From positions 1 to 64,000 of the forward strand of contig NIVC01004000.1 of NCBI GenBank assembly GCA_002269645.1: 64,000 nt of DNA, in the 5' to 3' direction. The DNA comes from Macrostomum lignano. Lineage: Eukaryota. Below are positions 1 to 39,450 of the stretch, in pieces (the stretch's first letter is position 1; every line of letters begins with the position of its first letter). The position numbers were made by a program, and so were the translations under genes. The notes under the pieces were generated by a model. The model made no database searches. It worked only from the letters and a program-made list of their open reading frames with translations, and had not been told where the DNA came from.

Positions 1-3000
1 CGCTGAGAATGTCATTCTCGTTGAACATCTTCCCCTGATAGCGGTGCTCATAGTAGTTCGCTATTCTCTGACGAAGAGCTCTAGGAAGCTTCCGGTAGGC
101 CATGTATTCCTCCACTTGTTTGAACTGTGAATTGCGATAGGATGGCGCCGGTTATTGCTTTGATTAGTTGCTAAATGTAATTAGATGACGCTGGAGTAGT
201 CTATCACCAAATAGGGTTCTGTATACTGTATAGTTATTAAAGGAGAAGCCTGATAACTAACTAAGAAAGGCCTGAAGAACAATTATAGAGGTAGCTAAAG
301 AGTCTTCACCATCCTAATCAGATTTTATTTCCGTTTCTGTTTCATTAAAATTCCTGATTTAAATTCGGAGCACTTTGATGATAAAATATCAGCAATATTT
401 TTCAATGCCTTGCAATATCAATCTGTGACGATGAAGACATTCTCCGGCAGGACACACTTCCCCGGGAAGTGATTAACAGAGCAAGCTAAGATATTGCTAC
501 AACATTGTTAAGACGTTATCCCCCGAGCTCACTTTCTCCCGATACATTCGCTTGGACGTGTCGAAGCTCTGTATCAGTGCCGCGGCGTGGCCGACGAAGA
601 GAGCGTAGCACGACGAGCCGGTCATCATGCTGACGATGGTGATCCAGGCCTCGCTAATGCTGGTTGGCGGGTGCTGACCGTAGCCAATGCTTAACATGTG
701 GCTCATGGCCTTGAACAGAGCCCAGGTGTACTGTCGGAACCAGTGAGCGTCCTACAAGTAAAGATGGTGACAACGCCGTATCAGTTCGGTACTCGTAATG
801 TGAGTATAATGCATTTTCGATGGCGGTAAATCTCAATTAACTCTATATTTAAAATCCTAAAACTAGAGACAATATATAATAACATCTATGCAGCGCAGCA
901 AACAAAGATTAAAACATTCGACAGAAGTTAGGAATAAAGATTATGCATAAGTAGTAATAATTTATCGCTTACAACAAAAATTGGCAGGCAAATGGCAGGA
1001 GTGGAAGACATCTAAAAATTCATGACACCCATATTCTATTCTCTGTATCTACGTGGATGGATGCAGTGTGTAAATGTACTTTAAACTGTACCACCTAAGG
1101 GAGCCTGGTTTGTTGATCAAATGAGTCCGATGCATTCCAATAGCATACCGAACCAATATGGCCCTTCTGTAATTTGCTGTGGAATGCTATCGCCTAAATA
1201 TCTATATATAAATCAATAATTGTAAAAACTTGTTGGTCTACTGAAGAGAACAGCTGAACAAAATTATAGAAATATGTTTTTAATGCAGTGATGGGTACCT
1301 GAATGTTCAGCTTCCTAACCCAGGAGTCTTTGGGAAAGTCCTGTATCGACGGTACAAGAAACTGCAAGCAGCCGTTCCAGTGCGCTAGCAGCAGCATCAG
1401 ACAGACCAGATTGACAACACGAATGAACACGGAGGCTACATTCAACAGCTGAAACGGGGGTTACATTAACGCGAGTGCTTACTGTGGCTTGTGCTTATTT
1501 ATGTCATAGTGCCAGCATATTAATGATGCAGGTGCCTTATTGCACAAAACATAAAGTTAATAACTTTTTCCGACAGTGAAAAGATTGAGTAATTGCATTA
1601 CTTTATGTTTAGTAAATCCAGTCAGTTTAAAAATGCAAACAACGTAACAAAGATTTGTTTAACTAATTCGTTATTAGTCTTAGGCCCAACTTAGGTTTCT
1701 GTGTGCAAAACATTATTTATCTGGGAGCTACAAATCCTAATCTTGTTTCTTTTTTGAAGAAGTTTTAATGCTTTCATTTGGGGTAATTTACCAATCTTAT
1801 ATCATACGGGTCAGTGAAAACTTTTGCTAATTTTTTTAGTATCAACTACTCGAACTGTACTCGGTTTTCGACATAAGATGACATGACATGCTTGGAATCA
1901 AATTAAAAGGATATTCAAATAGATTTAGCACACTTTTTGACTCAGAGTCTTGGCAAAATCATAATTGGATTCTGAACACATGAGCAGTGATGGCAGGTAC
2001 ACTGACTCGTACAGATACAAATGACCACTCTTAAGTCACCTTCAAATTGCAAACGGCCACCCAAGACTGATCAGGGAAGTCTTGCAGTAGCGGGATTAAG
2101 AACTGCAAGCAGGCATTCCAGTGGGCCAGCAGCAGCATCAGCAGTACTAGGTTAAATATGCCTATGAACTTATTTGCTATGTTCAGCAGCTGCAACATAA
2201 GATGGTGAAAGAGTGGAAAAATGTTATGCATAGTTCTAGCCTTTTTACAGTGAATCAGTCATCACAGCTTTGAACAGGATTTTAAATAAAGTTCACTTTG
2301 AAATCGGTCGATAATTTTTCAAAAAACCTTTTTGAAATAATAAGCATTGTGTACATTTGAGAATTTATAGATTTTTTTTATATTTTCTTGTGGTGTGAGT
2401 ACTTTTAGCTGAGGATTTATCGATAATGTTATTTGTTTTCCTGAACTTATCGCCTAGTTAAATTTAGTTAAATCATTGAGTTTTTGCCGACATCCGGTTA
2501 ACGCAGTCAAATTAATTGGTGCTAGTCAGTCATTGCGTCAATTAAATTTAGAGCTGTCGTTTTTTATTCAGTGTTGTTGTTGATTATACCGTTTCGATTT
2601 CAAATTCTACAGAGTCAAATTCGTCAGTATGTAGCTATATGTTGCCATGGAGCAGCTAACAGCGAATGAACATCAACTTACAATTGAATAACCGCCACCT
2701 ACCTAAGTACCTAAGTTACGAAATGATTGATTTTGTTGCATTATGATGCAAAGCAAAGCATGACACGAGAGTGGCAGAAAGATATAGGGTGAGAGGGAGA
2801 CAGGAATACAGGCTGGCTGTAGAGACACAGAAGCTCACTTATTTCTTCGAATTTGAAGTGAAATTGGTAAGCTTTTTTACCCAAGACACATGCGTTTCCT
2901 ACCCGAGCAGAATGCAGTAAAGGTCTGAGCGTCTGAGCTAAGGACGTCTTAATCTTAGCTGACGAATTTCAGTTAGTCAAATTAGAAGTCGGTTGTCTCT

Positions 3001-6000
3001 ACTCTACCAACGACACTAGCTTAATTCTTGCTTGTCGGGAAAAAGGCAACCAAGTTGATAATTTGGCCATAGACATCAGCAAAATAAGGATGCCAGTAGC
3101 AACGTCTTATAGAAATTATGCTGCCTTTCCCGTCTATGTCTCAGTCTCTGGGCAAGGCCAAATCTACTGCTGCCAAATGGGAAGTCTTAACTTGGTTGGC
3201 CTAACTATTAACTTGGCTGACAAAAGAAATACTTTGGCTTCTCTCTGCTGCTTACCTTTGCATTTCATAATCAAGACTTATTTTTTTATATAATCTTCGT
3301 AGCTAGTAGCATTTTAATTCCAACCTCAGAAAAACACTATCGAAGTCTCATTATCGAAGTCAGGCTAACACAAACAGCCAATTAGGCTTGGAGTTATTGC
3401 AAAACTAGGCAGGTTCTAGTATCGGCATCTAGTATGCGCTAAGCGAGCGTGCGAACATCATCCGGTATTCGTGAATTGCCCGGGTCTACCGATTGCAGTG
3501 AACTGCGGCTTCACCTTTAATCCTTCCTTGGTTACCCAAGAGTCGTCTGGGAAGTCGTTGAGAAACGGCACAAGGAATTGGAGGCAAGCGTTCCAGTGGC
3601 CAAGGAGCAGCATTATTAGAATCAGCTTTACTATTCCAAGGCACTTTGTTGCAACTTGCAATAGCTGAAATTTATATTGATTTCTTACGTTACATTTTAG
3701 TGCACTAAATACTGGCGACTCGGAAAATGTAGTAAAATGTTTTATGCAAGTGACATGTGTTAGAAATGTACCAAACCAAAAAACTGCAGTAAACAAGGTG
3801 TTGTTACAGTAATTACAATTGATGAATTATGGGCGTTTAAAAATATCCTGGTATCTGTATGATATTGAGACGCAAAAGAGTTTGCAGCTTTGATAATAAA
3901 ATCCACTCACCTCTTCCCATTGGCTGACATAGCGAACCAATCGCGAGAGCCGTAGCAGTCTTAGCAGGCTGAGCAACTTGGCTAGACGTAGGATCCTCAG
4001 TGCTCGACCTGGATGAGCAAGGATTTGATGGGCTTTGGAGCTGTGCGCTTAAGTTGGTTTAGGTTTATTTCACTTCTACATCAGAGTGAAAAAATGGGGC
4101 ACCATTGGTGCTACTTGTCCTTGACCACTCTCATGGTGAGATATCGGCATATGGCAGCTGTTAAACTCACCCGCATGTACCAGTTGGCTAACATTGCCTC
4201 GCTGATTCAGAGCCAAAAATATATAATCCATTGGAATAGAGGACACTAGATCGAGAAAGAACCACGACTTGACGTAGTGTTGAGCTATCAGCTTTGGATC
4301 CAGTATGATTTCGTCCGCGAAGTCGTTTGTTATTACGCCTGCAATATTTGATAAAATTTAGATGCTTAAATAGGAAGTATAGAGAGCATCATGTCTTTCA
4401 CAGGTGAAGGAAAAGTCTGGAAACAAACCGGTTCGAAAGTTGACGGCAATATCGCTTAAAAAGATGGTGTCGGACAAGCAGTTAAATATGATCCAATGCG
4501 CGCTGAGGTCGTCGTTGAAGAACGATATCGCCACCGGTAGCACAACCAAGTTGGTTATCAGGAGGATCAGCATCAGGAGGTCCCAGTAGAAACTGAGAGT
4601 CACAAAGGAGGAAGCGGTGATGCATTTCCATTGAAGTCTGTCTAAAACTCTTCTTTGCTTAATTTTCAGAATGCGAGAGCTAACTGCAAATGAAATTGTA
4701 CTATTAAATAAAGAACAATGTCTCATGCGCCTTGTCTGTCAGGCTCATTAAAATAATTTTCAAGCGGCTCTGCGGGAGCCGCGTATGTTCGCCTTTGATG
4801 CATGTTTTGCGTAGCTTTCCGCAATGGAAAGAAGTGAAACAAAGAATTCCACCCGGTCCACCCGGCAGCTGGAGGAATGTAGCGAGAGTGAAGTGCCTGA
4901 ATGAGTGGAGGAACTTTCCATAGCTAGATGGTAGGCAAGTTGACAAATAGCACAACAATAGCATCTACATCGGTAGCGATGGAAGTACCCCGTTAAGCAG
5001 CTATGATAAAGAGCCTTGGTGCTGTGTTTTGAAATGGAAATTACCCAACTGTCTAGTAGCCCGCCAACTCTAGACAGGAGAGAAGCGTGATGACGAATGA
5101 TGGACAGTCAGGTTAATTAGGCCCATGGGTTGAGAGAGTGGAAGAGCATTGAAGAGTCGTGACTACAGTGTTCATGCTTTAGTTACTGGAAGCCGAGCCA
5201 AGCATAGTTGCTATACGTGTATAATTAGAGTAAAACTACAAATTGCTTGGACAATTGACTAACAGCCAATGTTAAATAAATACTGACTTCACGCCTTACC
5301 GAAAGTTGCTGCACGGATGAATGATCCATTTGCCAGACTGCTGCTGTCTCTGCTTCTCTTTTAACAGAGCGTTTTTATTGCCAAACAGCTTCATTGCCAG
5401 CTTGTTGTCCGACGGCTGGAAGAAGGCGAAGAACTGCTCTTTCAGGTAGCTGGACGTGCTCTGCTTCTGATCTTCGGGCAATTCACAGCCCGTCTCCAGC
5501 ACTGCAGCATCGTCTAGTTGGCTGTTAGAGTCGCATTTCTCAATGCAATCGGGCTGCATGCATTGCTGCTGTTGCTGCTGTTGCAATCCGTTCGATGGCT
5601 GCTGCAGAGACTGCAGCGAAGGATTCTGCTGGAGAGTCTGCTGCCTTCGAAGGGAGCCAAGGCGGGAGCCGATGCGGGACCTCAGGCTGGGCCAGCGGCG
5701 CACTTTGGAAGAATTCCTGCTTGGACTGTCCTGCTGCTTCTGGCCCTGGGAAGAGTAGCCGGAAAATTCCGTGCACGACTCCATCGATTTTGACGACTTC
5801 CGGTTTGGAGGAGACGCGGAGGTGCACACAGAAGAGGAGGCTGCGGCTGCCGAGTTGGCAGGTGCTGCCACGGATGATGAGGTGTCGAGCGATTTAAAGG
5901 CCCGCATAGCTTTCAAATCCGGACGGCGCGTTCTCGGCTGTGGCTCAGGCGGGGTCTGGGAGTGCTGACCGGAGGTTGCAGCTGACTGCTTGCTCAACAG

Positions 6001-6144
6001 GCGCAGCCCGAAATCATCAACAGGCAGAGACTCGCTGCGGTCTATCAGAGCAGTGGCGCTGTCGGAGTCTGCATGGTTTTGATGGGGTGGGTTTGGACTG
6101 GAGTCTGATTGGCTATAAAAGTCTTGCTTGCAGACCAATCTCAA
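1..6144 (-). CDS. HCN: HCN (Ih) hyperpolarization-activated cyclic-nucleotide-gated channel; multi-exon, 3' part (CNBD) beyond left edge; exact start codon uncertain
   Basis: Exons on minus with GT-AG and matching phases: ~6144(?)-5300 (...[11 protein letters not shown]), 4592-4429 (FYWDLLML...NFRTG), 4338-4171 (...[18 protein letters not shown]), 4008-3911 (S4 [32 protein letters not shown]), one of 3664-3515 / 2189-2040 / 1448-1299 (S5), 751-533 (pore [11 protein letters not shown]6), 124-1 (C-linker [14 protein letters not shown]). The ORF-track start at 6144 is TTG, so the true 5' end is unresolved. Confidence 0.96.
1299..1448 (-). CDS. HCN: HCN alternative S4-S5/S5 exon C (most canonical copy)
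   Basis: tttcag|CTG...CAG|gtaccc, 150 nt, phase 0/0: [50 protein letters not shown]. Confidence 0.93.
2040..2189 (-). CDS. HCN: HCN alternative S4-S5/S5 exon B
   Basis: ttgcag|CTG...AAG|gtgact, 150 nt, phase 0/0: [50 protein letters not shown]. Confidence 0.9.
3515..3664 (-). CDS. HCN: HCN alternative S4-S5/S5 exon A
   Basis: tttcag|CTA...AAG|gtgaag, 150 nt, phase 0/0: [50 protein letters not shown]. Confidence 0.88.
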
Positions 6145-8510
6145 AGTTGACTGGCAATGAAATGAAAAACATAGGAAACTGAATAAGAATTTCGACCCTA
6201 ATAAGATTCAACTGAGATGAAATCTCACTTCGCGAGCGTGCATAAGACTATCGTGAGACTGCATTGAGGATAAATAAATCAAGATGTATGTTATTGTGCA
6301 GGATATTCAAACTACAAGCAACGGAAACGGGTTTCGTGACCGAATCTCCGGTATCAGTTGAGTCCCAGTTTCCAGACGGGTTCATGAATGTTTCCCGACT
6401 AGCAAGCTAGAGGATAAAAGTGTACAGTTCAAGTTTTCGCGCCTGCATGGTGCTCAATATTCGATCAGGCCGAATTGAGACTTATTTATCCTCAACTCAG
6501 CACCATAGTCGCAGAACTATGACAGGCAGTCATCGCTCAGTCAGAGTCAGCAGCGCGAGTTCTGTTAAACTTCGGCTAAATTTGACGGCCCAATTTGAGA
6601 TGCCTCCGCCCGCGGCGAGTGCCACCAGTCAGCTAGGATCTAGATGCGGCTTAGTGCGCATCGAGATGCCGCTACGAGAGTATGCACTGTGCATCAGCTG
6701 GTATTGCATCGGCATAACTTGTTCTTGTGCAGACTTTTCAGTTCTACCGCCTACCAGATAGCTGACTTCATCCAAAAATGTCCTAATACTATTCGTGTAC
6801 TTTTATCATGTCTATGCACTATTAGCGTCAAATATCCATCTACATGTAGTGGCTAATAAATAGCATGAAATTAAAGTCAAACTAGAAACTGATAGCTTCT
6901 TATTTTGACATTCAGTATTTTGAACTTGTTGACTATATGAAAAAATTAACATATTATATTACTAGTACACTACTTATGGAACACTATAATTTTCAGTAGT
7001 ATACCAAGAGAAAAAACGGTCAATTCTTTTAGTTTTGATCATGGAAAATGGCTGCTCGCCTTATACTCGTAGCCACGAATTTAACAGGTATAAAACACGC
7101 CCTTGCGACTCAAAGAGTTAGTAACAAGCGACAAGGACTAATAAAGTTTGTTACACTAAAACAAACAAGGATTGTGATACATGAGTTGATAGGATTAACT
7201 CGAGGACTTCCTGAGTAGATGTTTCTTTCTTCGCAGTTTAGAGTCAAAAGGAACTCGTATAGATCTATAAATAAAAAAACATTCCCAAACAGAAAAAAAT
7301 ATGAGTTCAAAGGCGGAGTCGCTGCAAAAAATCTGACTGCTCATCCTTGAGAATTTACTCAGCACTTACGCCCCCAGTATATCTATAGTGTACGGAGTCA
7401 TCACGTGTTTCTTCGGGCGCATAAATACATATTACATATTAGGCTTTTTTCCGATCCTATTTTGCCTGAGACCGCGATCGAAAATTAGAAGGCCCTCGGG
7501 CTTCCGCCCCGGTCTCACCTGTCTCTCCCTTTGTGTCCCGTATCGTCTTCAAGCCAGGCTATCTGCCCACCCCAATGCGGTCTCTTGTTTCCCCTGTATA
7601 TGCATGCTGTGTGCTCTAGACATCAACTAGTGCACAGATCACTGTCACTCAGATTGCAAATTGGGCTCGGGGTCGAGAGGGTTGACGACTTCATCGGATT
7701 ATATACAGATGAAAGCGAGAGGATCGGGCATGTGGTGAAAAAAATCTTGGGTGTGGAGCTAAGATAGGTTGGATAATTATACCGCAAGGTTACTGCAAAT
7801 AATGGATGTCGCATTAAAGGCATGAATAATTCTATAGCACTGCGCCGAGCCCAGCGCACTCCCGATGGACTTGGTTTCCCTTACTAATTTCCTTTGCCAT
7901 GTATGCATCCTATGTAACGCCAATGGTACCGGCAACCATAAGAATATTGGACTTTTGTAATGCCACTAAGACAAACTCTAAGCTTTCGATCGAGTCAATG
8001 GTGTATCAATTCCGGGTGGCGCTAAAAATCTAAAATCAAAATCATTTTAACAAACTCAATTCTCTAACTAGCCAATGCGTTTCGACAGTTATCTTTGCCC
8101 GCCGATGTTTGTCAACTAGAGGGGTGTTTCTCAGAGCAAATTTTTATCTTAGGTTCCAACGTAGCCCTGAGGTTAGGATACATAGGTGTTTTATGAACCA
8201 GACTCGAAGAGAGAAACAATCGAAATTAAGAGTGACAGTGTTTCATAAAAGAAGAGATAGTCTGTGGTGAACCCCGTCCCGATGTGGACAAGGATTTGTC
8301 CTAAGTCGAATAGAATTGATATTTGACATATCTCAGCTCATCCACTGTGAAGAATATATGACTACAAACATTGACGGTCCGTAGCAATTATCAGACGAGT
8401 GACTTGGCATTTGTCGGCAACTTACACTTCTATTGTCTAGACGAGAAATCCATGATCCCCACCAAGATGGCTCAGTCTTAACTGGCATCGATGTTGGAAG
8501 TGACGATCGG

Positions 8511-15482: not shown

Positions 15483-18400
15483 TTATTGCCTTCCACCGCC
15501 CGTGCGAATGTAGGAGATCGTCGTTGGAACGTGGACCTCCTCGAATGTGCACAAGAATGCGTCTGCGCTCTGCAATGCAGTACATGTAGGTTCGAGCGTG
15601 TAACAATGGGCATAATGCTTTAACAGTCTAGACTACTGGAGTTCGCCCAGTCAAGTAGTCATGCTGGAGTATATTAAGCCTTTCAAACCTTTTCGTCCGG
15701 CAGGCAGGCACCGAGAGCCTGCAACAGGAGTGGCTCATCAACAACGCTGCTCTTGAACTGGGCATAGTCAATGGTACCCTTCTTCTGCGTGTCCTGCGGG
15801 TTGAATGCATGAATTGTGTTTGAAGCTGATGTTGGAACACGTCTATGGCCAAAATACCAGCTATTGAATATAGACCGACACTGTGGAAAGCTTCTTTATA
15901 TATTTAAGAATTTGAGCATTCATTTAAGGCATTTAAGGCCACTACCAATCATATTACTTTCATCTACCTACATGCACCGTCTATGGTCAAAACACCGCGT
16001 CTATGGTCAAAACACCGTCTATGGTCAAAACACCGTCTATGGTCAAAACACCGTCTATGGTCAAAACACCGTCTATGGTCAAAACACCGTCTATGGTCAA
16101 AACACCATCTATGGCCAACTTAAAACTTGTCTATGGTCAAAACACTGTCTATGGTCAAAACACTGTCTATGATCAAAACACCGTCTATGGTCAAAACACC
16201 ATCTATGGCCAACTTAAAATCTTGTCTATGGTCAAAACACCGTCTATGGTCAAAACACCGTCTATGGTCAATGGGACAGGCAAAGGCAGAGCATTAAATT
16301 CAATGCTCTCCCCATACGCGGCTTAGACCATAGACAATTCCAAGTTTAAGATAAGCAATCCATGTTATTCCAGGTTCATCCATGGTTGGCAGGGTCTTGA
16401 ATTAAATGCAAAATTTCCTAAATAATTTTTTTTAAATCTTGCAATTAGGGGGCGCAATGGGCGGTTTCATGACCCACTGAGAATGTCTATGGTAAAAAGA
16501 CCGCGCAATTCAATGACGTCACAAAATTCAAAGACAGGTCTTCTCTAAAGAAAGGAGTGCTTGTATGGACTTACATAATTTTGATTAGTCAAATTTCCTT
16601 TGAATTATTTACTATATCATTAAAGTTTACTAAACAGATAAAGGATATATCTGTTTAATAAATACGTAGATTCCGCCCATCTACGAAGTCGCAATTAATT
16701 ACGCTAACGTCAAATGAAAATTGTCGCTTTAGAATGCGACTTCTGACTTAAGTTTTAATAAAAATTATTGTTATTATTTGTTTGCTCCGTTACTAAAATT
16801 ACTCACAAACTTTTTGAAGACAATCTCCACCAGGTCCCTGACACCCTCGTCGGGATCCTCTTCCACGGGTTGCTGAAATTTAAAGTTTGTTACTGTTTTA
16901 ATACACTGTTTAAACAGGTATTTCTGCTTTAAGTTTCCAGTCTAAAACCATACATGGAATTCTGAATCTGCTTCAAATTTATTCGAAACATTAGCAACAA
17001 TTTGAAAAGATGTTCTTAAATTTTTTTTGTGACAGGCAGTGAATTTTTGCTATTTTTGTGCAAGTTCAATGAATTTAACTTTGCAGTTTAAACAGCCGAT
17101 GTTCAGGTCCATAACGCGTTCATATTAGGAGCATATTGCGCAAGGAAAGTACTTTATCAAGCAAACATGCCGATTAAAATGGCTAATATAGCCGATGATA
17201 ATTAGCATTTTTCACGAGTCTAGGAATTGAATGCCAAAAAGTAACCCATAGCAAATACAATAAATCATTAGTAGGCCATAGGCGCAGTACAACTGGATTG
17301 AATTGAATGAAACTTCTAAGAAAACGAGATTCCAAGTGCAAGTTTAATTTATTATCAAAATTGTGCAAATTGTTCACATCTTGCAATTGCTGCATTCAGA
17401 CATGCGTATGACGTGTGTGTTGAACCATAAAAAATTACAGCAAGTTTGGAACTTTATCTAGCAAATACGAGACAGCACTTACGTAGTCCAGGCTTCCCTA
17501 AGGTGGGTTTGGTAGGATTTGTTAATATAATTGTATAAATTTATAAATTGCAAATCGTAATTTAGGCTTTCGACAGGAATAGATTTGGTAATAACACAGG
17601 GTGAAAAAATCAGAGCCAATTTTATAAATAGCTATATCTGATCGTCTTCTTGCTGAAGTTGATTATTGCGCTAAGTTTAAAGATGTTATCTCGGGTATAG
17701 ATAGAAGCATTTAAATATGTTCAACATAACAGTTCGTAGAAACATTATTTACCATTCAGACGACAATTGAAACCCAAAATCGTTTAAATATAGCTACTCA
17801 CCCTAATCAGAGTTGACTTCAGCAGCTGAAACATCTCGTCCCTGCTGATGACTCCATCCGAGTTGAGATCGTACGCTCGGAATGCAACTGAAACCGCGAG
17901 AAATTGTCAATTTGTTATGATTGGGGGGCAAAATAGGTGCAAATCCTGGGAACTTGTAATCATAACCTCATACTGCATGGCTAAAAGCGGAATTCTTACA
18001 ACTGGTTTTCTCTTCCAATGTGCCTCTGAGAAACGTTGAAATGCCTTTGAGCCACTCTTCCTGACTGATGTTGGAGTCGGAGTCTGTGTCGAAGGCTCGA
18101 AATACTGAAGCGTCATTTTCGCGTGTAAATGTCTGATATATTATGATTTTTGAAAAAATATATCAATTCTAAAAAAAGTTTATTACCTTGGTCCATCATC
18201 AAATCGTCTGTCATGCCGAACGAATTGTGCAAGATGTCCTTGAACTTATTTCTGTCTAGTTTAGCATCATCTGCACCGCCAGTAATGTCTTTGTACATGT
18301 TCAAGAGATGCTCGCATTCCTTTTTTGTAACTGAAATTGTAGGAACTTAATTTTTTTACAAAACTGAATCGTCAGATGGTATCATGATTGAAAATAAAGT

Positions 18401-18826: not shown

Positions 18827-19735
18827 TGTGAGGTTGTGGTTATCGTATTATCATATACTCGAAAAAAATGATTAAACAGCTTTTAAAAGCTTATATAGCA
18901 AGCGTCAAACGTGAATAAAAAGTGCTTTCAAATATCTCAAGAATTAAACGAACTTGAATTTGCGCTAGTTAAAGTAACTTTAGTGATACAAGAATAAACA
19001 AATGCATTTGTGTCCATATAATATTTACGCAAACTTTACACAGAGACTATCTTATGTTATTTATAGTTTAAAAGTTGATGTCGCAGTAGGTAACTTGTTC
19101 GTCTGAATATTGATATTGGAATATTTTTGACTTTGTAATTATTCTTAGAAACAATGACGAAACTTTAAATTTTAAACGTTGCCGCTATAACTGTACATGC
19201 ATTGATTGTCAGTATCTTGATTTCCTAATAGCATTGTGTATTAGATTATTCTTTTACATGTAATGCTATCCAATATAATTTTTTACGATTTTAGGCTTAT
19301 ATGCTAAAAATTTTACCATACTACTAAATCTCATCTCACCCATCATTTATTTTTATTTCTATGACTAGATTCCAATTATAAATTAAGTTTTCCATTTTTC
19401 GAAAGGGCTGGGACTGGGAGCTATTCTTCATAATCAAAATTTAGCTGCTGTAACTATGTACATGGAGACTAGGCCAAACTTAATCATTTTGTACACTAAC
19501 TGTGTACAGAGGCACGCCTGGCTCCTCTGTACGCCAAGTTGTATGCCAATGGTGTACTCTATGTCCCTCTATACGCCGAGTGAGTCTGGCCTACAAGTAA
19601 AAGAATTTTACTAAACTTTAAAATGTCAATTTTTTGCTTAAAACTATTATTCTTTGTTTCACCTTGGTCTGTTTTCCATGTAAATAGCATTATTATTTCT
19701 AGTTTTGTTTCCTATCTTTGTAAAGGAGCTTTCCT

Positions 19736-21532: not shown

Positions 21533-22573
21533 ATGGAGGCCGACGAGCAGTTTGACTTTCTATTTAAAATAGTACTAATTGGCGACGCCGGTGTTGGCAA
21601 GTCCTGCGTTGTTCAACGCTTCAAATCTGGAAATTTTCTAGAAAAGCAAAGCAGCACTATTGGCGTAGATTTCACTATGAAGACTCTGGTTGTTGATGGT
21701 GCCAGGATTAAACTGCAAGTATGGGACACTGCTGGACAAGAGAGGTTCAGAACTATCACTCAGTCCTATTACAGATCCGCCAATGCTGTCATACTGGCTT
21801 ACGATATTACCAAGCGGGTATGTCTAATTTGTTGTTTGCTATCAATATTGTCCCTTCTCACCCATCATCCCCTCAGCCATCACCTCAGATATCACCCACC
21901 AGCCATCACCTCAGCCATCACCTCAGCCATCACCTCAGCCATCACCTCAGCCATCACCTCAGCCATCACCTGAGGCTGAGGCTATCACCCTCTTAGCTAT
22001 CACCTCATCAGCCATCACCCCTCAGCCATCACCTCATCAGCCATCACCTCCTCAGCAATCACCTCATCAGCCATCACCTCATCAGCCATCACCTCCTCAG
22101 CCATCACCTCATCAGCCATCACCTCCTCAGCAATCACCCCTCAGCCATCACAGCTATCGCTCCCTCAGCTATCACCTCATCAGCCATCACCTCATCAGCC
22201 ATCACCTCATCAGCCATCACTCATCACTTAACCTGATTTCCAGGAATCATTCGACTCCCTTACCACGTGGATTGATGACGTCAGTCGGTACGCCGGCTCC
22301 GGCATGTGTCAGATTTTAATCGGGTGCAAGAAAGATTTAGAACACCTGCGCGAAGTTCGAGTGACTGACGGAGTTGATTTCGCGGCCAAGATGGCCATGC
22401 TGACCTGCTTGGAGACCTCGGCCAAGGAGAACTCCAATATTGATCAGCTATTCGAGACGTTGGCCGCTGAACTGAAACGCCGACACGATGGCGGCATCTC
22501 CGGCGGTCAGGGCGACACTTCAGCAATTCACCTTAATAGCCGGTCACTTGGCAGTGGCTGGTCCTGTTGCTAG
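21533..22573 (+). CDS. RAB43: Rab GTPase of the Rab43/Rab19 group, 2 exons
   Basis: Exons 21533-21817 and 22244-22573 (phase 0). [38 protein letters not shown] and a C-terminal CC prenylation motif; G4 box reads GCKKD. Confidence 0.88.
21866..22225. repeat. 12/15-bp minisatellite (CAGCCATCACCT[CAT]) in the Rab intron
   Basis: Tandem copies visible. Confidence 0.92.
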
Positions 22574-25721: not shown

Positions 25722-28700
25722 ATGACCGAGTGCCACCAGCCTGAGGCGAAAACGGACTATGCCAACGGCTGCCTGCTAGAGCTGGATGAGCTTCGCGAGC
25801 TGGTGAGCCAGTGCGCCAGAAACAATTCAGTAGACGATTTGCAACAATTGCTCAGCCTCAACCGAGCAATGCCCGGCTTCAGCTTGAACCTACCCAGCTA
25901 CTCCAAGAGCTTCTTTGGTTGGACTCCGCTGCACCTGGCTGCTTTCTTTGGCCACTCTGAGGCCTGCCGATTCCTGCTGGAACATGGCGCCGATGTCGAC
26001 GCCCCAGCCGACAATGGCGACACTCCTTTGCACAAGGCCAGCTATACTGGCCGGTCGTCCGTGGTTCGAATCCTCCTAGACGCCGGCTGCGATGTCCGCC
26101 TGACAAACTACGCCAATCAGACCCCGTCAGATTTGGCTAAAACGCCTGAGGTTGCCGACATGATTGCTGCCGCTGAGATTCACGCTGGCAAACAGCTGGA
26201 GCAGAGATTGCTAGCGGCTGCTCAGGCTGGTGACTGCGGCACCGCGGACCAACTGCTGGGTAATTGAAAGCCTTAGACATTGAGAATCTTCACTAAACAG
26301 ACTTGGGAATTAAGAGAAACCGACTTTACGAATCGTAGGAGCCGCCTCTTAGCAGTTATTCTGATTCCCTGAGTTACCCCTGCGCAGCACCTGACTAACC
26401 CCTGAGTAACCCAAGAGCAGCACCTGACTAACCCCTGAGTAACCCAAGAGCAGCACTTGACTAACCCCTGAGTAACCCAAGAGCAGCACTTGACTAACCC
26501 CTGAGCCGCACCTGACCAACCCCTGAGTAACCCTGAGCAGCACCTGACTAACCCCTGAGCAGCACCTGACCAACCCCTGACTAACCCCTGACTAACCCCT
26601 GAGCAGCACCTGACCAACCCCTGACTAACCCCTGAGCAGCACCTGACCAACCCCTGACTAACCCCTGAGCAGCACCTGACCAACCCCTGACTAACCCCTG
26701 AGCAGCTCCTGACTAACTCCTGACCAACCCCTGACTAACCCCTGAGCAGCACCTGACTAACCCCTGAGCAGCACCTGACTAACCCCTGAGCAGCACCTGA
26801 CTAACCCCTGAGCAGCACCTGACCAACCCCTGAGCAGCACCTGACCAACCCCTGAGCAGCACCTGACCAACCCCTGACCAACCCCTGACTAACCCCTGAG
26901 CAGCACCTGACTAACCCCTGACCAACCCTTGACTAACCCCTGAGCAGCACCTGACTAACCCCTGACCAACCCTTGACTAACCCCTGAGCAGCTCCTGACT
27001 AACCCCTGAGCAGGACATGACCAACCCCTGACTAACCCCTGAGCAGCATCTGACCAACCCCTGAGTAACCCCTAAGCAGCATGTAACCAAGCAGCCTCTG
27101 AGCAGCACTTGATCAACTCTTTAGTAGCCTCTGAGCAGTGTCTGAGCAGTGTCTGAGCATATCCATGCCCCCCCTCTCGCGCAGGCCTGACCTGCCCGCC
27201 AGACCTGCACTGCACAGACCGGTACGGCAACACGCCGCTACACCTGGCTGCCAGATCCAACCGCAGCCAATTAGCAGTACAGTTATTAGAGCGAGGCGCC
27301 GATCCGTCTAAACGAAACCTGGCCGGTTGCTGTCCAGCTGATCTGGCTGTCAGCTCAGCGATGCGCCAGCTGCTCGCCTCGGTGCCCAGCCTACCGTCCC
27401 TGCTGCACCGGGACCCGCCCGCGCCTCGGTCCGGTCTGATGCAGAAGAAAGCCGCCTTCTTGTTGCTAGGCTGGCGGACTATACACGTAGAATTGGACAA
27501 CGCCGAGCTCAGGTATTATCGGGCGTCAAAATCTGGCGGACAGTACAGAGCAACCCAGAGTCTGGCGTTTCAACGGGCATTGAATGGCAGCGTGGTGACC
27601 AGCACGGATGTGCAAGCCGATTGTCTTGTTGTCTGCTTCAGCAATGGCGCCAGGTATTTATTGCATATGCTTATTATAGTGTATATTGGCACTACCCTTA
27701 TCTCTATCTGCCCCTTGTCTCTATCGGCCCCTTATCTCTATCTACCCTTATCTCTATCTACCCTTATCTCTATCTGCCGCTTATATCTATCTACCCTAAT
27801 CTCTATCTGCTCCTTATATCCCTGTCTGCCCCTTATCTCTATATGCTCTTATCTCTATCTAATCTTATCTTTATCTACCCTTATCTCTATCTGCCTCTTA
27901 TCTCTATCTGCCCATTATATCTATCTACCCTTAGCAGAGGAGAGCGGGGAAAAAGACGGGGAAACTGAGTCGCCTCCGAGCTCTTTCCACTGAGTTTAGA
28001 ATTTGAATCGGCATTCAATTTAAAGAATTTCACCGTCTCATTTCGGAGAATCTGGATGTCTCAATTTAATAGAGTATCTCATTATGTCAATCTGGAGACT
28101 CTCAAGACTCAAGTGGAAAGGTAAATATCAATTCTGCAGATCTTTGTCCAGAGAGTCTCAAACCAGAGCAGAAAATCTCAAACCAAACCAGAGAATCTCA
28201 ATCCAGACCAGAGAATCTCAATCCACACCCTCTAGACACACCCTCCGCTGCATGCCGGAGGATGACTCGCCAGTTGCCAGGCAACTGTGGCTCACCGCTA
28301 TTCGGCGTCACATCGAATTCGGCGACCGCCGGTTGGCCACCGACATCGAGGCGGCCGGATCTGCTAGCGACAGCAGCGGCGTAGGCGGCGGTCTGGAAAA
28401 CGGCGGCGGCGGCGGCTTTGTGCCGATCCGGTCAATGGCCGAGTCCGTCCGGGCCGCCGAGGCGCACCAGCAGATTCTGGTTGATCAGGTTGGCACTTAC
28501 AGCTGAGCACTCTGACACAGGCAGTCAATTACAGATGAGCACTCTGACACAGACAGTCAATTACAGCTGAAGCATTCTGACACCGACAGTCAATTACAGC
28601 TCAAGCATTCTGACACAGACAGTCAATTACAGCTCAAGCAGTCTGACACAGACAGTCAATTACAACTGAAACACTCTGACACAGACAGTCAATTACAGCT

Positions 28701-31700
28701 CAAGCATTCTGACACAGACAGTCAATTACAGCTGAAGCATTCTGACACAGACAGTCAATTACAGCTGAAGCATTCTGACACAGACAGTCAATTACAGCTC
28801 AAGCATTCTGACACAGACAGTCAATTACAGCTGAAGCATTCTGACACAGACAGTCAATTACAGCTCAAGCAGTCTGACACAGACAGTCAATTACAGCTGA
28901 AGCACTCTGACACAGACAGTCAATTACAGCTCAAGCATTCTGACACAGACAGTCAATTACAGCTGAAGCATTCTGACACAGACAGTCAATTACAGCTCAA
29001 GCATTCTGACACAGACAGTCAATTACAGCTGAAGCATTCTGACACAGACAGTCAATTACAGCTCAAGCAGTCTGACACAGACAGTCAATTACAGCTGAAG
29101 CACTCTGACACAGACAGTCAATTACAGCTCAAGCATTCTGACACAGACAGTCAATTACAGCTGAAGCATTCTGACACAGACAGTCAATTACAGCTGAAGC
29201 ATTCTGACACAGACAGTCAATTACAGCTCAAGCACTCTGACACAGGCAATTACAGCTCAAGTATTCTGACACAGATAGTCAATTACAGCTCAAGCATTCT
29301 GACACAGACAGTCAATTACAGCTGAAGCATTCTGACACAGACAGTCAATTACAGCTGAAGCATTCTGACACAGACAGTCAATTACAGCTGAAGCACTCTG
29401 ACACAGACAGTCAATTACAGCTGAAGCATTCTGACACAGACAGTCAATTACAGCTGAAGCATTCTGACACAGACAGTCAATTACAGCTGAAGCATTCTGA
29501 CACAGACAGTCAATTACAGCTCAAGCACTCTGACACAGGCAATTACAGCTCAAGTATTCTGACACAGATAGTCAATTACAGCTCAAGCAGTCTGACACAG
29601 ACAGTCAATTACAGCTGAGCACTCTGACACAGGCAGTCACTTACAGCTGAGCAGTCTGACACAGACAGTCAATTACAGCTCAAGCAGTCTGACACAGACA
29701 GTCAATTACAGCTCAAGCAGTCTGACACAGACAGTCAATTACAGCTCAAGCAGTCTGACACAGACAGTCAATTACAGCTGAAGAAGTCTGACACAGACAG
29801 TCAATTACAGCTCAAGCAGTCTGACACAGACAGTCAATTACAGCTGAGCACTCTGACACAGACAGTCAATTACAGCTGATGCAGTCTGACACAGACAGTC
29901 AATTACAGCTCAAGCAGTCTGACACAGGCAGTCAATTACAGCTCAAGCAGTCTGACACAGACAGTCAATTACAGCTGAAGCATTCTGACACAGACAGTCA
30001 ATTACAGCTCAAGCATTCTGACACAGACAGTCAATTACAGCTCAAGCAGTCTGACACAGACAGTCAATTACAGCTGAAGCACTCTGACACAGACAGTCAA
30101 TTACAGCTCAAGCATTCTGACACAGACAGTCAATTACAGCTGAAGCATTCTGACACAGACAGTCAATTACAGCTCAAGCAGTCTGACACAGACAGTCAAT
30201 TACAGCTGAAGCACTCTGACACAGACAGTCAATTACAGCTGAAGCATTCTGACACAGACAGTCAATTACAGCTGAAGCATTCTGACACAGACAGTCAATT
30301 ACAGCTGAAGCATTCTGACACAGACAGTCAATTACAGCTGAGCACTCTGACACAGGCAGTCAATTACAGCTGATGCAGTCTGACACAGACAGTCAATTAC
30401 AGCTCAAGCAGTCTGACACAGACAGTCAATTACAGCTCAAGCAGTCTGACACAGACAGTCAATTACAGCTGAAGCATTCTGACACAGACAGTCAATTACA
30501 GCTCAAGCATTCTGACACAGACAGTCAATTACAGCTCAAGCAGTCTGACACAGACAGTCAATTACAGCTGAAGCACTCTGACACAGACAGTCAATTACAG
30601 CTCAAGCATTCTGACACAGACAGTCAATTACAGCTGAAGCATTCTGACACAGACAGTCAATTATAGCTCAAGCAGTCTGACACAGACAGTCAATTACAGC
30701 TGAAGCACTCTGACACAGACAGTCAATTACAGCTGAAGCATTCTGACACAGACAGTCAATTACAGCTGAAGCATTCTGACACAGACAGTCAATTACAGCT
30801 GAAGCATTCTGACACAGACAGTCAATTACAGCTCAAACACTCTGACACAGGCAATTACAGCTCAAGTATTCTGACACAGATAGTCAATTACAGCTCAAGC
30901 AGTCTGACACAGACAGTCAATTACAGCTGAGCACTCTGACACAGGCAGTCAATTACAGCTGAGCAGTCTGACACAGACAGTCAATTACAGCTCAAGCAGT
31001 CTGACACAGACAGTCAATTACAGCTGAGCACTCTGACACAGGCAGTCAATTACAGCTCAAGCAGTCTGACACAGACAGTCAATTACAGCTCAAGCAGTCT
31101 GACACAGACAGTCAATTACAGCTCAAGCAGTCTGACACAGACAGTCAATTACAGCTGAAGAAGTCTGACACAGACAGTCAATTACAGCTCAAGCATTCTG
31201 ACACAGACAGTCAATTACAGCTGAGCACTCTGACACAGGCAGTCAATTACAGCTCAAGCAGTCTGACACAGACAGTCAATTACAGCTCAAGCAGTCTGAC
31301 ACAGGCAGTCAATTACAGCTCAAGCAGTCTGACACAGACAGTCAATTACAGCTCAAGCAGTCTGACACAGACAGTCAATTACAGCTGAAGCATTCTGACA
31401 CAGACAGTCAATTACAGCTGAAGCAGTCTGACACAGACAGTCAATTACAGCTGAAGCATTCTGACACAGACAGTCAATTACAGCTGAGCACTCTGACACA
31501 GGCAGTCAATTACAGCTGAAGCATTCTGACACAGGCAGTCAATTACAGCTGAAGCATTCTGACACAGGCAGTCAATTACAGCTCAAGCAGTCTGACACAG
31601 ACAGTCAATTACAGCTCAAGCATTCTGACACCATAGCAAACATTTCCTGTACTTCATTAACTCAGTTTAAGTTAAATTTTTTTACGTTTAAGTTAGAATC

Positions 31701-32249: not shown

Positions 32250-33410
32250 GACCCTATTCTATCCTGATCCCATTCTATCCTGATCCCATTCTATCCTGAT
32301 CCTATTCTATCCTGATCCCATTCTATCCTGATCCTATTCTATCCTGATCCCATTCTATCCTGATCCTATTCTATCCTGATCCCATTCTATCCTGATCTCA
32401 TTGTATCCTGATCCTATTCTATCCTGATCCCACTCTATCCTGATCCCATTCTATCCTGATCCCATTCTATCCTGATCCCATTCTATCCTGATCCCATTCT
32501 ATCCTGATCCCATTCTATCCTGATCCCATTCTATCCTGATCCCATTCTATCCTGATCCCATTCTATCCTGATCCCATTCTATTCTAACCCCATTTCTATC
32601 CGGATCCCATTCTATCCTGATCCCATTCTATTCTGATCCCATTCTATCCTGATCCCATTCTATCCGGATCCCATTCTATCCTGATCCTATTCTATCCTGA
32701 TCCCATTATATCCTGATCCCATTATATCCTGATCCCATTCTATCCTGATCCCATTCTATTCTAACCCCATTTCTATCCGGATCCCATTCTATCCTGATCC
32801 CATTCTATCCTGATCCCATTCTATCCTGATCCCATTCTATCCTGATCCCATTTTATCCTGATCCCATTCTATCCTGATCCCATTCTATCCTGATCCCATT
32901 CTATCCTGATCCCATTCTATTCTAACCCCATTTCTATCCTGATCCCATTCTATTCTAACCCCATTTCTATCCGGATCCCATTCTATTCTGATCCCATTCT
33001 ATCCTGATCCCATTCTATCCTGATCCCATTCTACCCTGATCCCATTCTATCCTGATCCCATTCTATTCTAACCCCATTTCTATCCGGATCCCATTCTATT
33101 CTGATCCCATTCTATCCTGATCCCATTCTATCCTGATCCCATTCTATCCTGATTCCATTCTATTCTAACCCCATTTCTATCCTGATCCCATTCTATCCTG
33201 ATCCCATTCTATCCTGATCCCATTCTATCCCGATCCCATTGTATCCTGATCCCATTCTATCCTGATCCCATTCTATCCTGATCCCATTCTATCCTGATCT
33301 CATTGTATCCTGATCCTAAACTATCCTGATCCTTATTCTATCCTGATCATATTCTATCCTGCTCCCATTCTATCCGGATCCCATTCTATCCTGATCCCAT
33401 TCTATCCATA
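32250..33410. repeat. 16-bp minisatellite (ATCCTGATCCCATTCT), about 70 copies
   Basis: Tandem array beginning about 30 nt after the OSBPL1A-like stop codon. Confidence 0.96.
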
Positions 33411-34129
33411 TCCCAGTAAATGTCAAGCTGACTCAAGCACAACGATAGCCGGTGTTCACAAGGATGCGCTTGTACGGCTCTCCAAGTTCTTATTCCAGTT
33501 TAACTTGTCCTAAATTTGTCAACCCAGAAGTCAGTAATTATATTTATATATTTATTAGGCCCCAGCCTATAAATTAAATATTTGGTATTCGATGAGTTCT
33601 TGGGAACTACTTTATTATTGCTCACAATAGACCAAACTGTTCAAATATGTGTACAATTAGTTTATGTTCATAATAAATAATCAGATATATTTAATAGTTT
33701 GTCATCCACAGCACGGTATTGAATATCAAAGCTGAGCCTTGTGCTAAATGCCGAATAGATTGATGTACACAAAAAAGCGTTTTTTTCGGGCTATCTGTGT
33801 GTGTCTTTGTCAACCAATAATACCGATCTATCATCATATCATCAACTGTACAAATGTTTTATTGCATTGTCTTGCAGTTTGCTGCCAAAATTATTTAATT
33901 GTTATTGTCATTGAAACACGAAATTGTAATATAAATTTTATCAATTATGAGTCATCAGTCATGCGATCTAAAAATAGTCTTGACACGATTTTCAGGTGAT
34001 AATTGTTTGTGTTCCACTAATCCAATACCGGAATTTATGCTTTCAACTAGTCTGTAATCTGTTAAATAAGATGGTTAACTGATTTTACAGTTCTGATTTT
34101 ATTTACTGTTTTCTTTGTTGCACTTTTAT

Positions 34130-38329: not shown

Positions 38330-39450
38330 GTCAGAGTGGTGGCTGAGCAGCAGGTCGGTGAGCTGGGGCCCGGTGCCCCGTGTGTGGGCACGCAGGCAGA
38401 GGCCGATCAACATCTGGCGTCGTCTCTGCGACCACGCGGGTCCGGGCCGCCAGCTCGGCGTTGCTCACGCGCTCGGGGAACCGGATGCCCAGGGCATTGT
38501 GCATGAGGTGGCGATGGCAGCCCTCCAAGCTCGCCTGACGAGTGGCAGTCATGGGAACAGCTACCAGCAGCCCGTAGGTCAGCACCGTCTCAACTGCCGA
38601 GCGGAATAGGGCGACGTTCAGGCTGTCGGTGGCGAGCCAGTAGTTGAAGATGGAGCGGAGAAGGTGGGAGGCCCACCAGGCTGTGCTTGCGGTTGTTGAC
38701 AATGACATCCGGGTCAGAGACCAGGACACCCCAGATACTTGAACTGGTTGCACAGGGCGATGGTGTTGCTGTCCGGCAGAAGCAGCAGTGGAGAGTTGGC
38801 AATGCCAACATGCAGCACCTCTGCCTTGCCGTAGTTGATGTGGAGCCCCACGCGCTTCCCCTCGTTGGTCCGCCGACTCACCGCCGTCTGCGCAGCTTTG
38901 AGACTGCAGCAGGTCAGCGCCAGGTCGTCGGCGCAGGCGAGGCAGGTCGGCTTGACGCAGGCAAAGCGGGAGCTACGGCGAAGCACCACTTCATAGCCGT
39001 CTTCATCGCGCAGAGCCAACCGCATGACGAAGTCGATCAGGATGACGAATACAAACAGGTGTCGCTTTGCGGAAGTGGTTGTCAATTCAGCTTTAGGGCC
39101 GTGGTCAGTCTAGACGAAAGCGCCTTGGATGAGCTGTAGAGGTCCATGATCGCCTGGACCAGCATCTGAGAAACTCCATGCTGCTGGAGGAGCTACGCAA
39201 TGGCCTGGCCGCCCGGCTGACTGAGTCAAAAGCTTTGCACAAATCTGCAAAAACAATTGACACCGCCTTTTGGCGAGTCTTGCAGGTGTCTATGATGCAC
39301 CGGACCGCAGCGACTTGTTTTTGCTGTTGACCGTCCAGGTTGGAAGCCGTTCTGGATATTGAGAAGCCTCTGGTTGATGATGGGTTGAATGCGGTTTCGA
39401 AGGATGGTGTTAGGACTTTGGCCAGGGTGCACTCCAGGGCGAAGTGACTG
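38330..39450 (-). mobile_element. Degenerate non-LTR retrotransposon reverse transcriptase (RTE-like LINE)
   Basis: Frameshifted RT motifs QNGFQPGRST, FADLCKAFDSVSR, ACADDLAL, GLHINYGKAEVL, CNQFKYLG; related to 51995-52930. Confidence 0.85.

Follow-up and report, generated by a model that had tools for sequence, protein, structure and literature searches.

The best-described relatives of the gene reported here are the vertebrate HCN channels 1 through 4 and the sea-urchin channel spHCN, which share one architecture, i.e., an Ion_trans_N domain, six transmembrane spans, a long basic S4, a GYG filter and a C-linker. Alternative S5 exons are not known from vertebrate HCN genes. It is a matter of ongoing debate how the HCN voltage sensor acts on the gate with inverted polarity. 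Among the few residue pairs which have repeatedly been implicated in keeping the channel shut is R339-D443 of mouse HCN2 (HCN1 R297-D401; the spHCN counterpart is R367-D471), an inter-subunit salt bridge which stabilizes the closed state (PMC3439648; PMC9085832; PMC11189445). The HCN2 mutant R339E leaks: its minimum open probability is about 43%, and the leak is sensitive to ZD7288. The spHCN mutant R367E leaks, too (PMC11050684). In HCN2, weakening of the contact by a modest 1.2 kcal/mol greatly changes the minimum open probability (PMC11050684). Three residues ahead of the Arg, i.e., at position -3, spHCN has A364; the mutant A364C forms Cd bridges with C-linker residues 473-479 which lock the channel closed (PMC3434101). 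A natural HCN paralog with incomplete closure is ciHCNb from Ciona intestinalis (PMC3487815).

The stretch of DNA analyzed here (64,000 nucleotides; the window) carries an HCN gene on its minus strand. The N-terminal exon (5300-6150, 5' limit provisional) encodes first a poly-Gln region of low complexity and then the Ion_trans_N motif. The exons for S1-S2 (4429-4592) and S2-S3 (4171-4338) follow, then a constitutive S4 exon (3911-4008) whose donor GTGAGT splices to one of three S5 exons, A, B or C. A constitutive exon (533-751) supplies the pore helix, the filter SIGYG, S6 and, in the motif SFDTS (554-568), the Asp behind S6. The first 41 residues of the C-linker are encoded at 1-124, where the gene leaves the window. 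Consequently the cyclic nucleotide-binding domain falls outside; the M. lignano HCN model P0374, to which the spliced window protein is 92% identical, continues into PF00027 cNMP_binding. The spliced protein matches PF08412 Ion_trans_N (E 1e-23) and PF00520 Ion_trans (E 2e-28), both above the gathering scores. Against solved structures phmmer returned HCN1, 3 and 4 at E 1e-134 to 1e-140 (HCN1 3e-140); other families scored far weaker (KCNH 5e-32, CNG 1e-28, KAT1 5e-20). The long S4, with a basic residue at every third position, and the SIGYG filter align with S4 and CIGYG of HCN1. By homology, the locus is an HCN (Ih) channel gene of a Macrostomum-type flatworm, for which opening upon hyperpolarization and a mixed Na/K current are predicted. 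The gene is not to be equated with Ih of D. melanogaster; its nearest relatives are from Macrostomum and other flatworms.

The core is 55-60% identical to the vertebrate channels and spHCN. Ser replaces Cys in the filter. Compared with vertebrates, four residues are missing from the S4-S5 linker, and as a result no Tyr corresponds to HCN2 Y331. The Arg is kept by exon C; the Asp and the adjoining basic pair (DTSKR versus DSSRR) are kept by the shared S6 exon. Exons A and B differ in having Gly in place of Arg, a Lys at -3 and the motif HWNAC.

Exons A (3515-3664), B (2040-2189) and C (1299-1448) are tandem homologs of exactly 150 nt and phase 0 at either end. They are bounded by canonical AG/GT splice sites (A, tttcag|CTA...AAG|gtgaag; B, ttgcag|CTG...AAG|gtgact; C, tttcag|CTG...CAG|gtaccc) and thus have the arrangement, equal length and phase, and splice signals of a mutually exclusive cluster. 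The segment encoded by each exon runs from the last part of the S4-S5 linker through S5 into the beginning of the turret. Pairwise protein identities are 56-64%, and tblastn within the window connects the three with E 1e-14 to 1e-18; a fourth copy of the S5 exon was not found in the window. A preliminary description of this DNA had drawn attention to positions 2040-3664, an interval bounded exactly by the end of B and the start of A, and had claimed that A and B lack the Arg of C. Six-frame translation agrees: the minus strand reads ATKCLG in A (3635-3652) and ANKFIG in B (2160-2177), both with Gly at the R339 site and Lys at -3, and ASVFIR in C (1419-1436), the canonical Arg-type exon. The second change, HWNGC in C (1368-1382) to HWNAC in A (3584-3598) and B (2109-2123), is equally seen in the translation, as is the replacement of the following Asn by Lys in A (VVNLV in C, IVKLI in A). 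Exon B in addition has a Cys in the turret.

The Arg of exon C aligns with human HCN1 R297 in an ungapped block against LASAVVRIFNL when HCN1 structures are searched with phmmer, and SFDTS aligns with SLDSS, i.e., D401, within the longer stretch IQSFDTSKR versus IQSLDSSRR. By numbering, R297 and D401 of HCN1 are R339 and D443 of mouse HCN2. The assignment is unambiguous, and the possibility raised in the preliminary description, that the Arg might align elsewhere, did not materialize. The acidic residue, said there to be kept by the shared S6 exon, is the equivalent of D443, and the closure biology described there for the pair agrees with the literature (PMC3439648; PMC9085832; PMC11189445; PMC11050684). 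At the cytoplasmic start of S5 the salt-bridge Arg is thus present in C and absent in A and B, and the Asp directly behind S6 is common to all isoforms by way of the shared exon. Among 122 aligned representatives of the family this site is Arg in 101 and Gly in 10, and eight of these ten are flatworm proteins. AlphaFold2 monomers of isoforms A and C have a mean pLDDT of about 74, which drops to about 57 at the S4-S5 turn. In these monomer models S4 and S5 form one continuous helix in A (pTM 0.50) and are separated by a turn at residues 196-199 in C (pTM 0.66), but at this low local confidence they are uninformative about the turn.

With a probability of about 0.6, we propose that splicing among the three tandem S5 exons changes how the closed gate is held, and that the Gly types have an altered lock. 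Exon C would supply the Arg which, as in vertebrate and sea-urchin HCNs, bridges to the post-S6 Asp of the neighboring subunit in the closed state. A and B would supply an old, flatworm-wide form of S5 with Gly at the site, a Lys one helical turn earlier and HWN(A)C, and the closed-state lock would be weaker or differently built. The outcome would be a shifted activation range, a larger voltage-independent component, or both. Since R339E is leaky and R339 and D443 form a bridge, the loss of Arg in A and B is, by analogy, a reasonable basis for expecting altered closure. A pairing of Lys(-3) with the acidic face behind S6 and in the C-linker probably softens the effect, and a simple constitutive leak would not be expected from the Gly-type isoforms. 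Any gating effect and the role of Lys(-3) are what we infer here.

Are A and B used at all? An ordered A-B-C cluster exists also on two M. lignano scaffolds (L001 and L005). The orthologs on L001 are A' (16758-16907, 74% amino acid identity; pN 0.15 versus pS 0.82), B' (18094-18243, 84%; omega about 0.07) and C' (19064-19213, 88%; omega about 0.10). Over all three exons pN is 0.06-0.15 against a pS of 0.43-0.82. An alignment of the window with M. lignano covers solely the exons; no similarity of the introns is left, and synonymous sites approach saturation. From this restriction of conservation to the exons, and from a dN far lower than dS, it follows that all three are under selection. One could argue that A, B or both are unused relics of duplication and that C alone is spliced in. 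The one clearly RNA-derived model retrieved, PAA78447.1 from M. lignano, indeed joins S4 straight to C' and skips A' and B', and A and B evolve faster than C. However, the 150-nt reading frames of A and B are open and their splice sites canonical, both here and in the two M. lignano copies, while the introns have lost all detectable similarity; the omega of B is low, and both exons are closer to the functional sole S5 exons of parasitic flatworms than to C. Relic duplicates are an extremely improbable explanation.

A second M. lignano model, the above-mentioned P0374, reads S4-A'-pore; it has no accession and its provenance is unclear. The evidence that A or B is included consists of this model and of conservation. 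Searches of a collection of 5.8 billion proteins brought up none derived from a transcript of the window's own species; the profile search of this collection returned short proteins only and missed P0032, and its silence is uninformative. Presumably one of A, B and C is chosen per mRNA, i.e., their use is mutually exclusive. Two copies spliced in together would be expected to add a transmembrane helix and to invert the pore. Since 150 nt is divisible by three, double inclusion would not be purged by a frameshift. Neither frame-dependent nonsense-mediated decay nor competing RNA pairing nor incompatible splice sites was found as a mechanism enforcing exclusivity; all sites are GT-AG. A conserved intronic docking or selector element was not detected between the introns of the window and of M. 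lignano, and the sole inverted repeat, a 12-nt pair (2007-2018 with 3851-3862), is of chance quality. In the literature searched we found nothing on splicing of flatworm HCNs and no electrophysiology of a flatworm HCN channel.

We retrieved HCN proteins from trematodes (Schistosoma, Clonorchis, Opisthorchis, Fasciola, Paragonimus and Echinostoma), cestodes (Rodentolepis, Hymenolepis and Anoplocephala) and the monogenean Cichlidogyrus, and the Gly form is the only one among them. In the three HCN loci which were read (S. bovis, C. sinensis and R. nana), the sole S5 exon has Gly, Lys(-3) and HWNAC. A motif scan and tblastn with E up to 50 uncovered no hidden Arg-type exon in these loci (L002-L004), which contain two small runs of N, both in L002. 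Every flatworm Gly-type exon seen has Lys at -3, and the post-S6 Asp is invariant in parasite lineages without any Arg-type exon. A turret Cys is common to B, B' and the exons of cestodes, the monogenean and trematode paralog 2. In an exon tree, which was built on 50 residues and is weakly supported, A, B and C were monophyletic in 0 of 500 bootstraps, and A and B grouped with the parasite exons in 52%. Since the Gly form stands alone in the parasites examined and is always accompanied by Lys(-3), the Gly-type S5 is an ancient flatworm module and not a local defect.

These findings bear on the stronger claim that A and B function mainly as background cation conductances with little voltage dependence, and that splicing toggles between pacemaker and leak. 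Linker mutants of Y331 and R339 display a complete constitutive conductance, many linker and S6 mutants are partly constitutively open, the charge reversals R339E and R367E described above leak (PMC11050684), and nature has produced incompletely closing paralogs such as ciHCNb (PMC3487815). By analogy, a leak-versus-pacemaker switch by splicing is plausible. Yet if Gly alone abolished gating, the trematodes, cestodes and the monogenean examined would have no gated Ih at all, although S4, C-linker and nucleotide-binding domain are intact and strongly conserved in these very animals. Conserved Lys(-3) and invariant Asp point to a retained contact. Further, the mutants compared have a vertebrate background and carry charge reversals or substitutions which are not specified; none has a Gly with co-evolved neighbors. 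In its full strength the claim is therefore improbable. In animals which have the Gly form only, this form is to be regarded as the working channel rather than as a special leaky isoform, and the parasite channels, being the sole HCN form, may gate normally.

How far, then, does Lys(-3) make up for the missing Arg? The conserved Lys together with the retained Asp suggests at least partial compensation. Because Lys(-3) is present in every flatworm Gly exon and spHCN A364 bridges to the C-linker, the positive charge may, by analogy, have been moved rather than lost. Taken to its end, this argument has Lys(-3) fully replacing Arg as partner of the post-S6 acidic residue; A, B and C would close equally well, and the choice of exon would tune kinetics, S5 packing (HWNAC; NLVL versus NLVC), the turret with its extracellular Cys, or subunit assembly. 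The lock-closed bridges of A364C (PMC3434101), the Asp kept by parasites which lack an Arg-type exon, the exclusively Gly-type HCNs of Neodermata and the turret Cys shared from B to the trematode paralog 2 exons are all in line with this. On the other hand, Lys(-3) occurs alongside Arg in HCNs of leech, orthonectid and other spiralians; thus the Lys is probably older than the loss of Arg and was not selected as a replacement. Being three residues earlier, it cannot sit where the Arg sits. Thr is found at -3 in P0172, a Gly exon of environmental origin (on a 945-bp contig without a neighboring HCN exon), and in HCN2 the small energetic weakening cited at the outset already shifts the minimum open probability greatly (PMC11050684). 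We consider full compensation possible, if rather unlikely. An altered lock, its effect probably softened by Lys(-3), is the reading we prefer. On the contigs examined for pairs of Arg- and Gly-type exons outside flatworms none was seen: P0172 is without a neighbor, as stated, and there is just one S5 exon on each of L006 and L007, two related contigs of the Arg type.

A broader and more speculative proposal, about which we remain doubtful, is that the closed-state lock was rebuilt early in flatworms, with Arg lost and the charge transferred to Lys(-3). Exon choice in Macrostomum would then switch one gene between the ancestral, Arg-locked pacemaker channel and two channels with an altered lock, whose open probability at rest or voltage range would differ substantially, and parasites would possess the altered form only. 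If true, evolution would itself have dissected and tested HCN electromechanical coupling, and the HCNs of the parasites would differ in structure from those of the host. The gene offers matched isoforms which differ only in the 50 residues around the contact, with and without Arg, and a whole clade of parasitic flatworms has dispensed with the Arg and kept the Asp. Such a set bears on the question of whether the channel needs the bridge, can replace it or can tune it, and on whether splicing physiologically sets the voltage-independent fraction of Ih. As all HCN proteins retrieved from schistosomes, liver flukes and tapeworms have the Gly-type S5 and none of those retrieved from vertebrates does, parasite and host channels differ at this site by a defined residue.

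Ouyang and colleagues (2007, cited in PMC3487815) are reported to have described that arthropod Ih genes are alternatively spliced (Drosophila DMIH and spiny lobster PIIH). As proposed for the window gene, arthropod Ih genes gain channel diversity by alternative splicing of exons for the transmembrane region. In the arthropod proteins we retrieved, the variable part precedes the S5 exon and ends in VSQWEEVYFLNMASV, KTSNLVFKFLNMASV or YIFLIFNQFLNMASV. ASVFM(R/K) and HWSGC are kept throughout, and in none is Arg replaced by Gly. As a functional precedent, ciHCNb has a large voltage-independent component and has kept hyperpolarization sensitivity and the response to cAMP; its behavior has been attributed to a divergent region between transmembrane segments and not specifically to the R339 site (PMC3487815). 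It arose by gene duplication, whereas the variants in the window would arise by exon choice. Counterparts of A and B are present in parasitic flatworms, whose HCN genes have an S5 exon with the same 150-nt, phase-0 limits and the same Lys(-3), Gly and HWNAC. These exons are 56-78% identical to A and B, and B is closest (70-78% at the amino acid level). HCN proteins of Schistosoma fall into three paralog groups, all of the Gly type, and an Arg-type was not retrieved. The parasite loci which were read each have a single S5 exon (n=3), and the window gene combines one Arg-type with two Gly-type exons.

The HCN gene is encoded on the minus strand, from window position 1 to about 6150, and extends past the window start, as judged from minus-strand translation and splice-site reading. 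An N-terminal exon (5300-6150) is followed by the exons for S1-S2 (4429-4592), S2-S3 (4171-4338) and S4 (3911-4008). Next come three alternative S5 exons, A (3515-3664), B (2040-2189) and C (1299-1448), then a shared pore/S6 exon (533-751) and the start of the C-linker exon (1-124), all on the minus strand. A, B and C are each 150 nt long, a multiple of three, are in phase 0 at both ends and have a pyrimidine-rich tract with a terminal AG directly before them and GT directly after them. Their products share 56-64% protein identity; a fourth copy is absent from the 64-kb window. Six-frame translation returned the motifs exactly as first described: ATKCLG and HWNAC in A, ANKFIG and HWNAC in B, ASVFIR and HWNGC in C, and SFDTS in the shared S6 exon. 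The Asn-to-Lys change reported for A is equally real (IVKLI vs VVNLV); it is also seen in Rodentolepis nana and is common among distant HCN-like channels. In B-type exons a Cys of the extracellular turret is conserved (AVCNLK, SRCGLK, KRCKLE, QRCRLK, VKCRLQ, MKCRLR). It is present in window exon B, in the Macrostomum lignano scaffold L001 (18094-18243) and in many parasite exons, and is absent from A, C and trematode paralog 1. Possibly it is a disulfide or redox site which sets the isoforms apart. HWNAC, the Asn-to-Lys change of A and the turret Cys may lend exon choice further functional relevance.

The window from 8489 to 63520 is unusually dense in minisatellite arrays (46 TRF rows in 64 kb, e.g., 28497-31631, 32256-33415, 40150-40907, 48245-49295 and 62416-63520), with units including 33 nt x 96, 16 nt x 72 and 40 nt x 28. 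These arrays account for the extreme GC/AT-skew blocks of the composition profile, and several yield long spurious open reading frames. Other gene fragments were called by eye from ORF translations. On the plus strand are a probable Rab-type small GTPase exon (21533-21800), a probable ankyrin-repeat protein (25722-26267), a probable E2 ubiquitin-conjugating enzyme of the UBC fold (58568-59065) and a probable Glu/Gln-tRNA-synthetase-like N-terminus (61499-62029). Probable mobile-element fragments, likewise called from translations, are a mariner/Tc1-like transposase C-terminal ORF and reverse-transcriptase-like pieces at 55034-55459 (minus), 38331-39509 (minus) and 51839-52336 (plus).

By every feature testable in the window the predicted product is an HCN channel. 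The spliced core of 358 residues matches the solved human HCN1 and HCN4 structures with E about 1e-140, the best KCNH channel with 5e-32, and contains the Pfam domains Ion_trans_N and Ion_trans. The cyclic-nucleotide-binding domain (CNBD) lies outside the window and is present in the M. lignano ortholog P0374. The S5 block of exon C (30 residues) aligns with HCN1 without gaps (HMMER), thus its Arg corresponds to HCN1 R297; SFDTS pairs with SLDSS, which identifies the Asp as D401. The sole alignment gap, four residues, is upstream in the S4-S5 linker and leaves the S5 block unaffected. By numbering, the mouse HCN2 equivalents are R339 and D443, precisely the residues named in the preliminary description, and the biology given there agrees with the literature (PMC3439648, PMC9085832, PMC11189445, PMC11050684). 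A salt bridge R339-D443 was proposed to be important in closure (PMC3439648). It is formed between subunits and "locks the closed channel conformation" (PMC9085832); in HCN1 the R297-D401 pair stabilises the closed, not the open state (PMC11189445).

The proteins nearest to the window product are from M. lignano, a free-living flatworm, followed by those of trematodes and cestodes. Isoform A is 92% identical to P0374 across all 358 residues, and P0374 continues into the CNBD. At the DNA level the window exons are about 70-86% identical to the M. lignano exons; no retrieved M. lignano sequence is identical to the window, which would stem from a related species or be an old duplicate. Scaffold L001 and a second copy, L005 (96% identical to L001), each possess three S5 exons in the order of the window, with intact 150-nt frames and AG/GT sites. 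Protein identities of the window exons to their counterparts A', B' and C' are 74, 84 and 88%, respectively. In a blastn comparison of the window with L001 the exons alone align, and intron similarity was not detected. Between these two loci pN and pS are 0.15 and 0.82 for exon A, 0.11 and 0.66 for B, and 0.06 and 0.43 for C. As pN is far below pS in all three pairs, A, B and C are under purifying selection. Constraint on A and B is somewhat weaker than on C; weaker constraint is common in alternative exons.

The GenBank annotation of the M. lignano assembly is derived from RNA-seq (PMC5730564). In its model PAA78447.1 the S4 exon is joined straight to C', and A' and B' are skipped. In P0374, on the other scaffold, S4, A' and the pore exon are joined; this model has no accession and may lack RNA support. 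Matches in the protein collection included no transcripts of the window's own source. We infer that A, B and C are used mutually exclusively because each encodes a complete S5 helix, and two of them would invert the pore. Conserved intronic pairing between window and M. lignano was not found. A 12-nt inverted repeat, 92% complementary, has one arm in the intron after the S4 exon (3851-3862), and its second arm follows shortly after exon B (2007-2018). It could be a docking/selector pair, and is short enough to have arisen by chance. At the S5 exon cluster several public gene models of flatworm HCN channels are broken. In PAA78447.1 the reading frame runs on into the intron behind C', and what follows of the gene is annotated as a CNBD protein of its own (L001 10001-19315 and 21268-24098); UniRef A0A1I8GLZ6 fuses WEE with the middle part of a C-type exon; P0198, a model from Paragonimus, leaves out the S5 exon entirely.

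How widespread is the Gly type? We tabulated the site over the 120 best homologs and aligned selected ones. Every trematode and cestode HCN protein among these 120 has Gly with HWNAC and a Lys three residues before the Gly (ASKFMG, ANKFIG, AGKFIG); this position is denoted -3. Arg and HW(N/D/S)GC are kept in leech, orthonectid, acanthocephalan, arthropod, echinoderm, cnidarian and vertebrate proteins. Isoform A was further searched exhaustively against 1.84 billion cluster representatives. Among 122 representatives aligned at the site, 101 have Arg, 10 Gly and 11 another residue. Of the ten with Gly, eight score best of all matches, and each of them has Lys(-3), Gly and Ala; they stem from the cestode Anoplocephala, the trematodes Fasciola, Heterobilharzia, Schistosoma, Echinostoma and Opisthorchis, and the monogenean Cichlidogyrus. 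The retrieved Schistosoma proteins form three HCN paralog groups, all with Gly. The loci of S. bovis, Clonorchis sinensis and R. nana each contain a single Gly-type S5 exon with 150-nt phase-0 boundaries; even permissive searches of these loci uncovered no second copy. A short environmental contig (JGI metagenome 3300039238, Ga0438693_1135848, 230-379) has a single-exon ORF, P0172, for an HCN S5 exon. At the Arg site it has Gly, but position -3 is Thr and the second motif reads HWNGC (FITIANTFMGIFNLV...). It is closely similar to Arg-type exons on two other environmental contigs and could be a second, independent Arg/Gly alternative exon from a non-flatworm animal.

In a neighbour-joining tree of the 50-residue exon products (500 bootstraps), which is short and weakly supported, A, B and C grouped together in 0 of 500 bootstraps, and A and B cluster with those of the parasites (52%). 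Exon B is 70-78% identical to parasite exons vs 64% to C. Tree and shared signature indicate that the split into Gly and Arg types predates the divergence of Macrostomorpha and Neodermata. Macrostomum has kept both types in one gene and the parasites the Gly type alone.

Exon choice would exchange the cytoplasmic beginning of S5 and with it the residue which in other closed HCN channels bridges to the post-S6 Asp of the neighbouring subunit. In HCN2 the mutation R339E causes a leak that is sensitive to ZD7288, and the minimum open probability is then about 43%; the spHCN mutant R367E leaks as well (PMC11050684). Since in HCN2 a weakening of the contact by 1.2 kcal/mol is enough to lift this minimum from a very low value to about 43% (PMC11050684), Gly-type and Arg-type isoforms likely differ in closed-state stability. 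Such a difference would show in the activation range, in voltage-independent current or in both. The preliminary description suggested that A and B may be leaky or voltage-shifted, and that splicing could switch between a pacemaker channel and a background cation conductance. Its premise, Gly in A and B at the aligned Arg, stands, and its claim on gating is plausible; the comparative data lower the likelihood that A and B are plain leak channels. In a whole clade in which S4, C-linker and CNBD are otherwise well conserved, HCN occurs in the Gly type only, and the partner Asp is invariant in lineages devoid of the Arg. Further, all flatworm Gly-type exons have Lys(-3), which is a single helical turn from the Gly and faces in roughly the same direction. 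At the corresponding spHCN position, A364, an introduced Cys forms Cd bridges to C-linker residues 473-479, which lock the channel closed (PMC3434101). Might this Lys fully replace the missing Arg? Against this, HCNs of leech, orthonectid and other spiralians have both Lys(-3) and Arg, and the Lys therefore probably predates the loss of Arg; moreover, P0172 combines Gly with Thr at -3. Our best estimate from these alignments is partial compensation: Gly-type isoforms would still gate, with shifted properties.

The window appears to carry an HCN gene in which the closing-gate Arg is optional through splicing; elsewhere in the phylum the version that lacks this Arg is the rule. In a literature search of incomplete coverage we found no paper on flatworm HCN splice variants or on a lineage-wide loss of this Arg. 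For the study of HCN electromechanical coupling the gene provides a clean natural experiment, the significance of which hinges on electrophysiology, and the Arg/Gly site is a defined sequence difference between parasite and host. Alternative splicing of invertebrate Ih genes is known from Drosophila and lobster (cited in PMC3487815). The arthropod proteins retrieved, however, all keep Arg (or Lys) and vary in the part that precedes the S5 exon. Arthropod isoforms (P0027, P0028, P0030, P0057, P0069, P0073, P0074 and others) have VSQWEEVY, KTSNLVFK, SKSNLIFK or YIFLIFNQ before FLNMASVFMR. These differing ends point to exons of the S4 region that are alternative or skipped in insects, a splice hotspot other than that of flatworms. 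Ciona has a natural HCN paralog which does not close fully (PMC3487815); in contrast to the exon choice proposed here, it arose by gene duplication.
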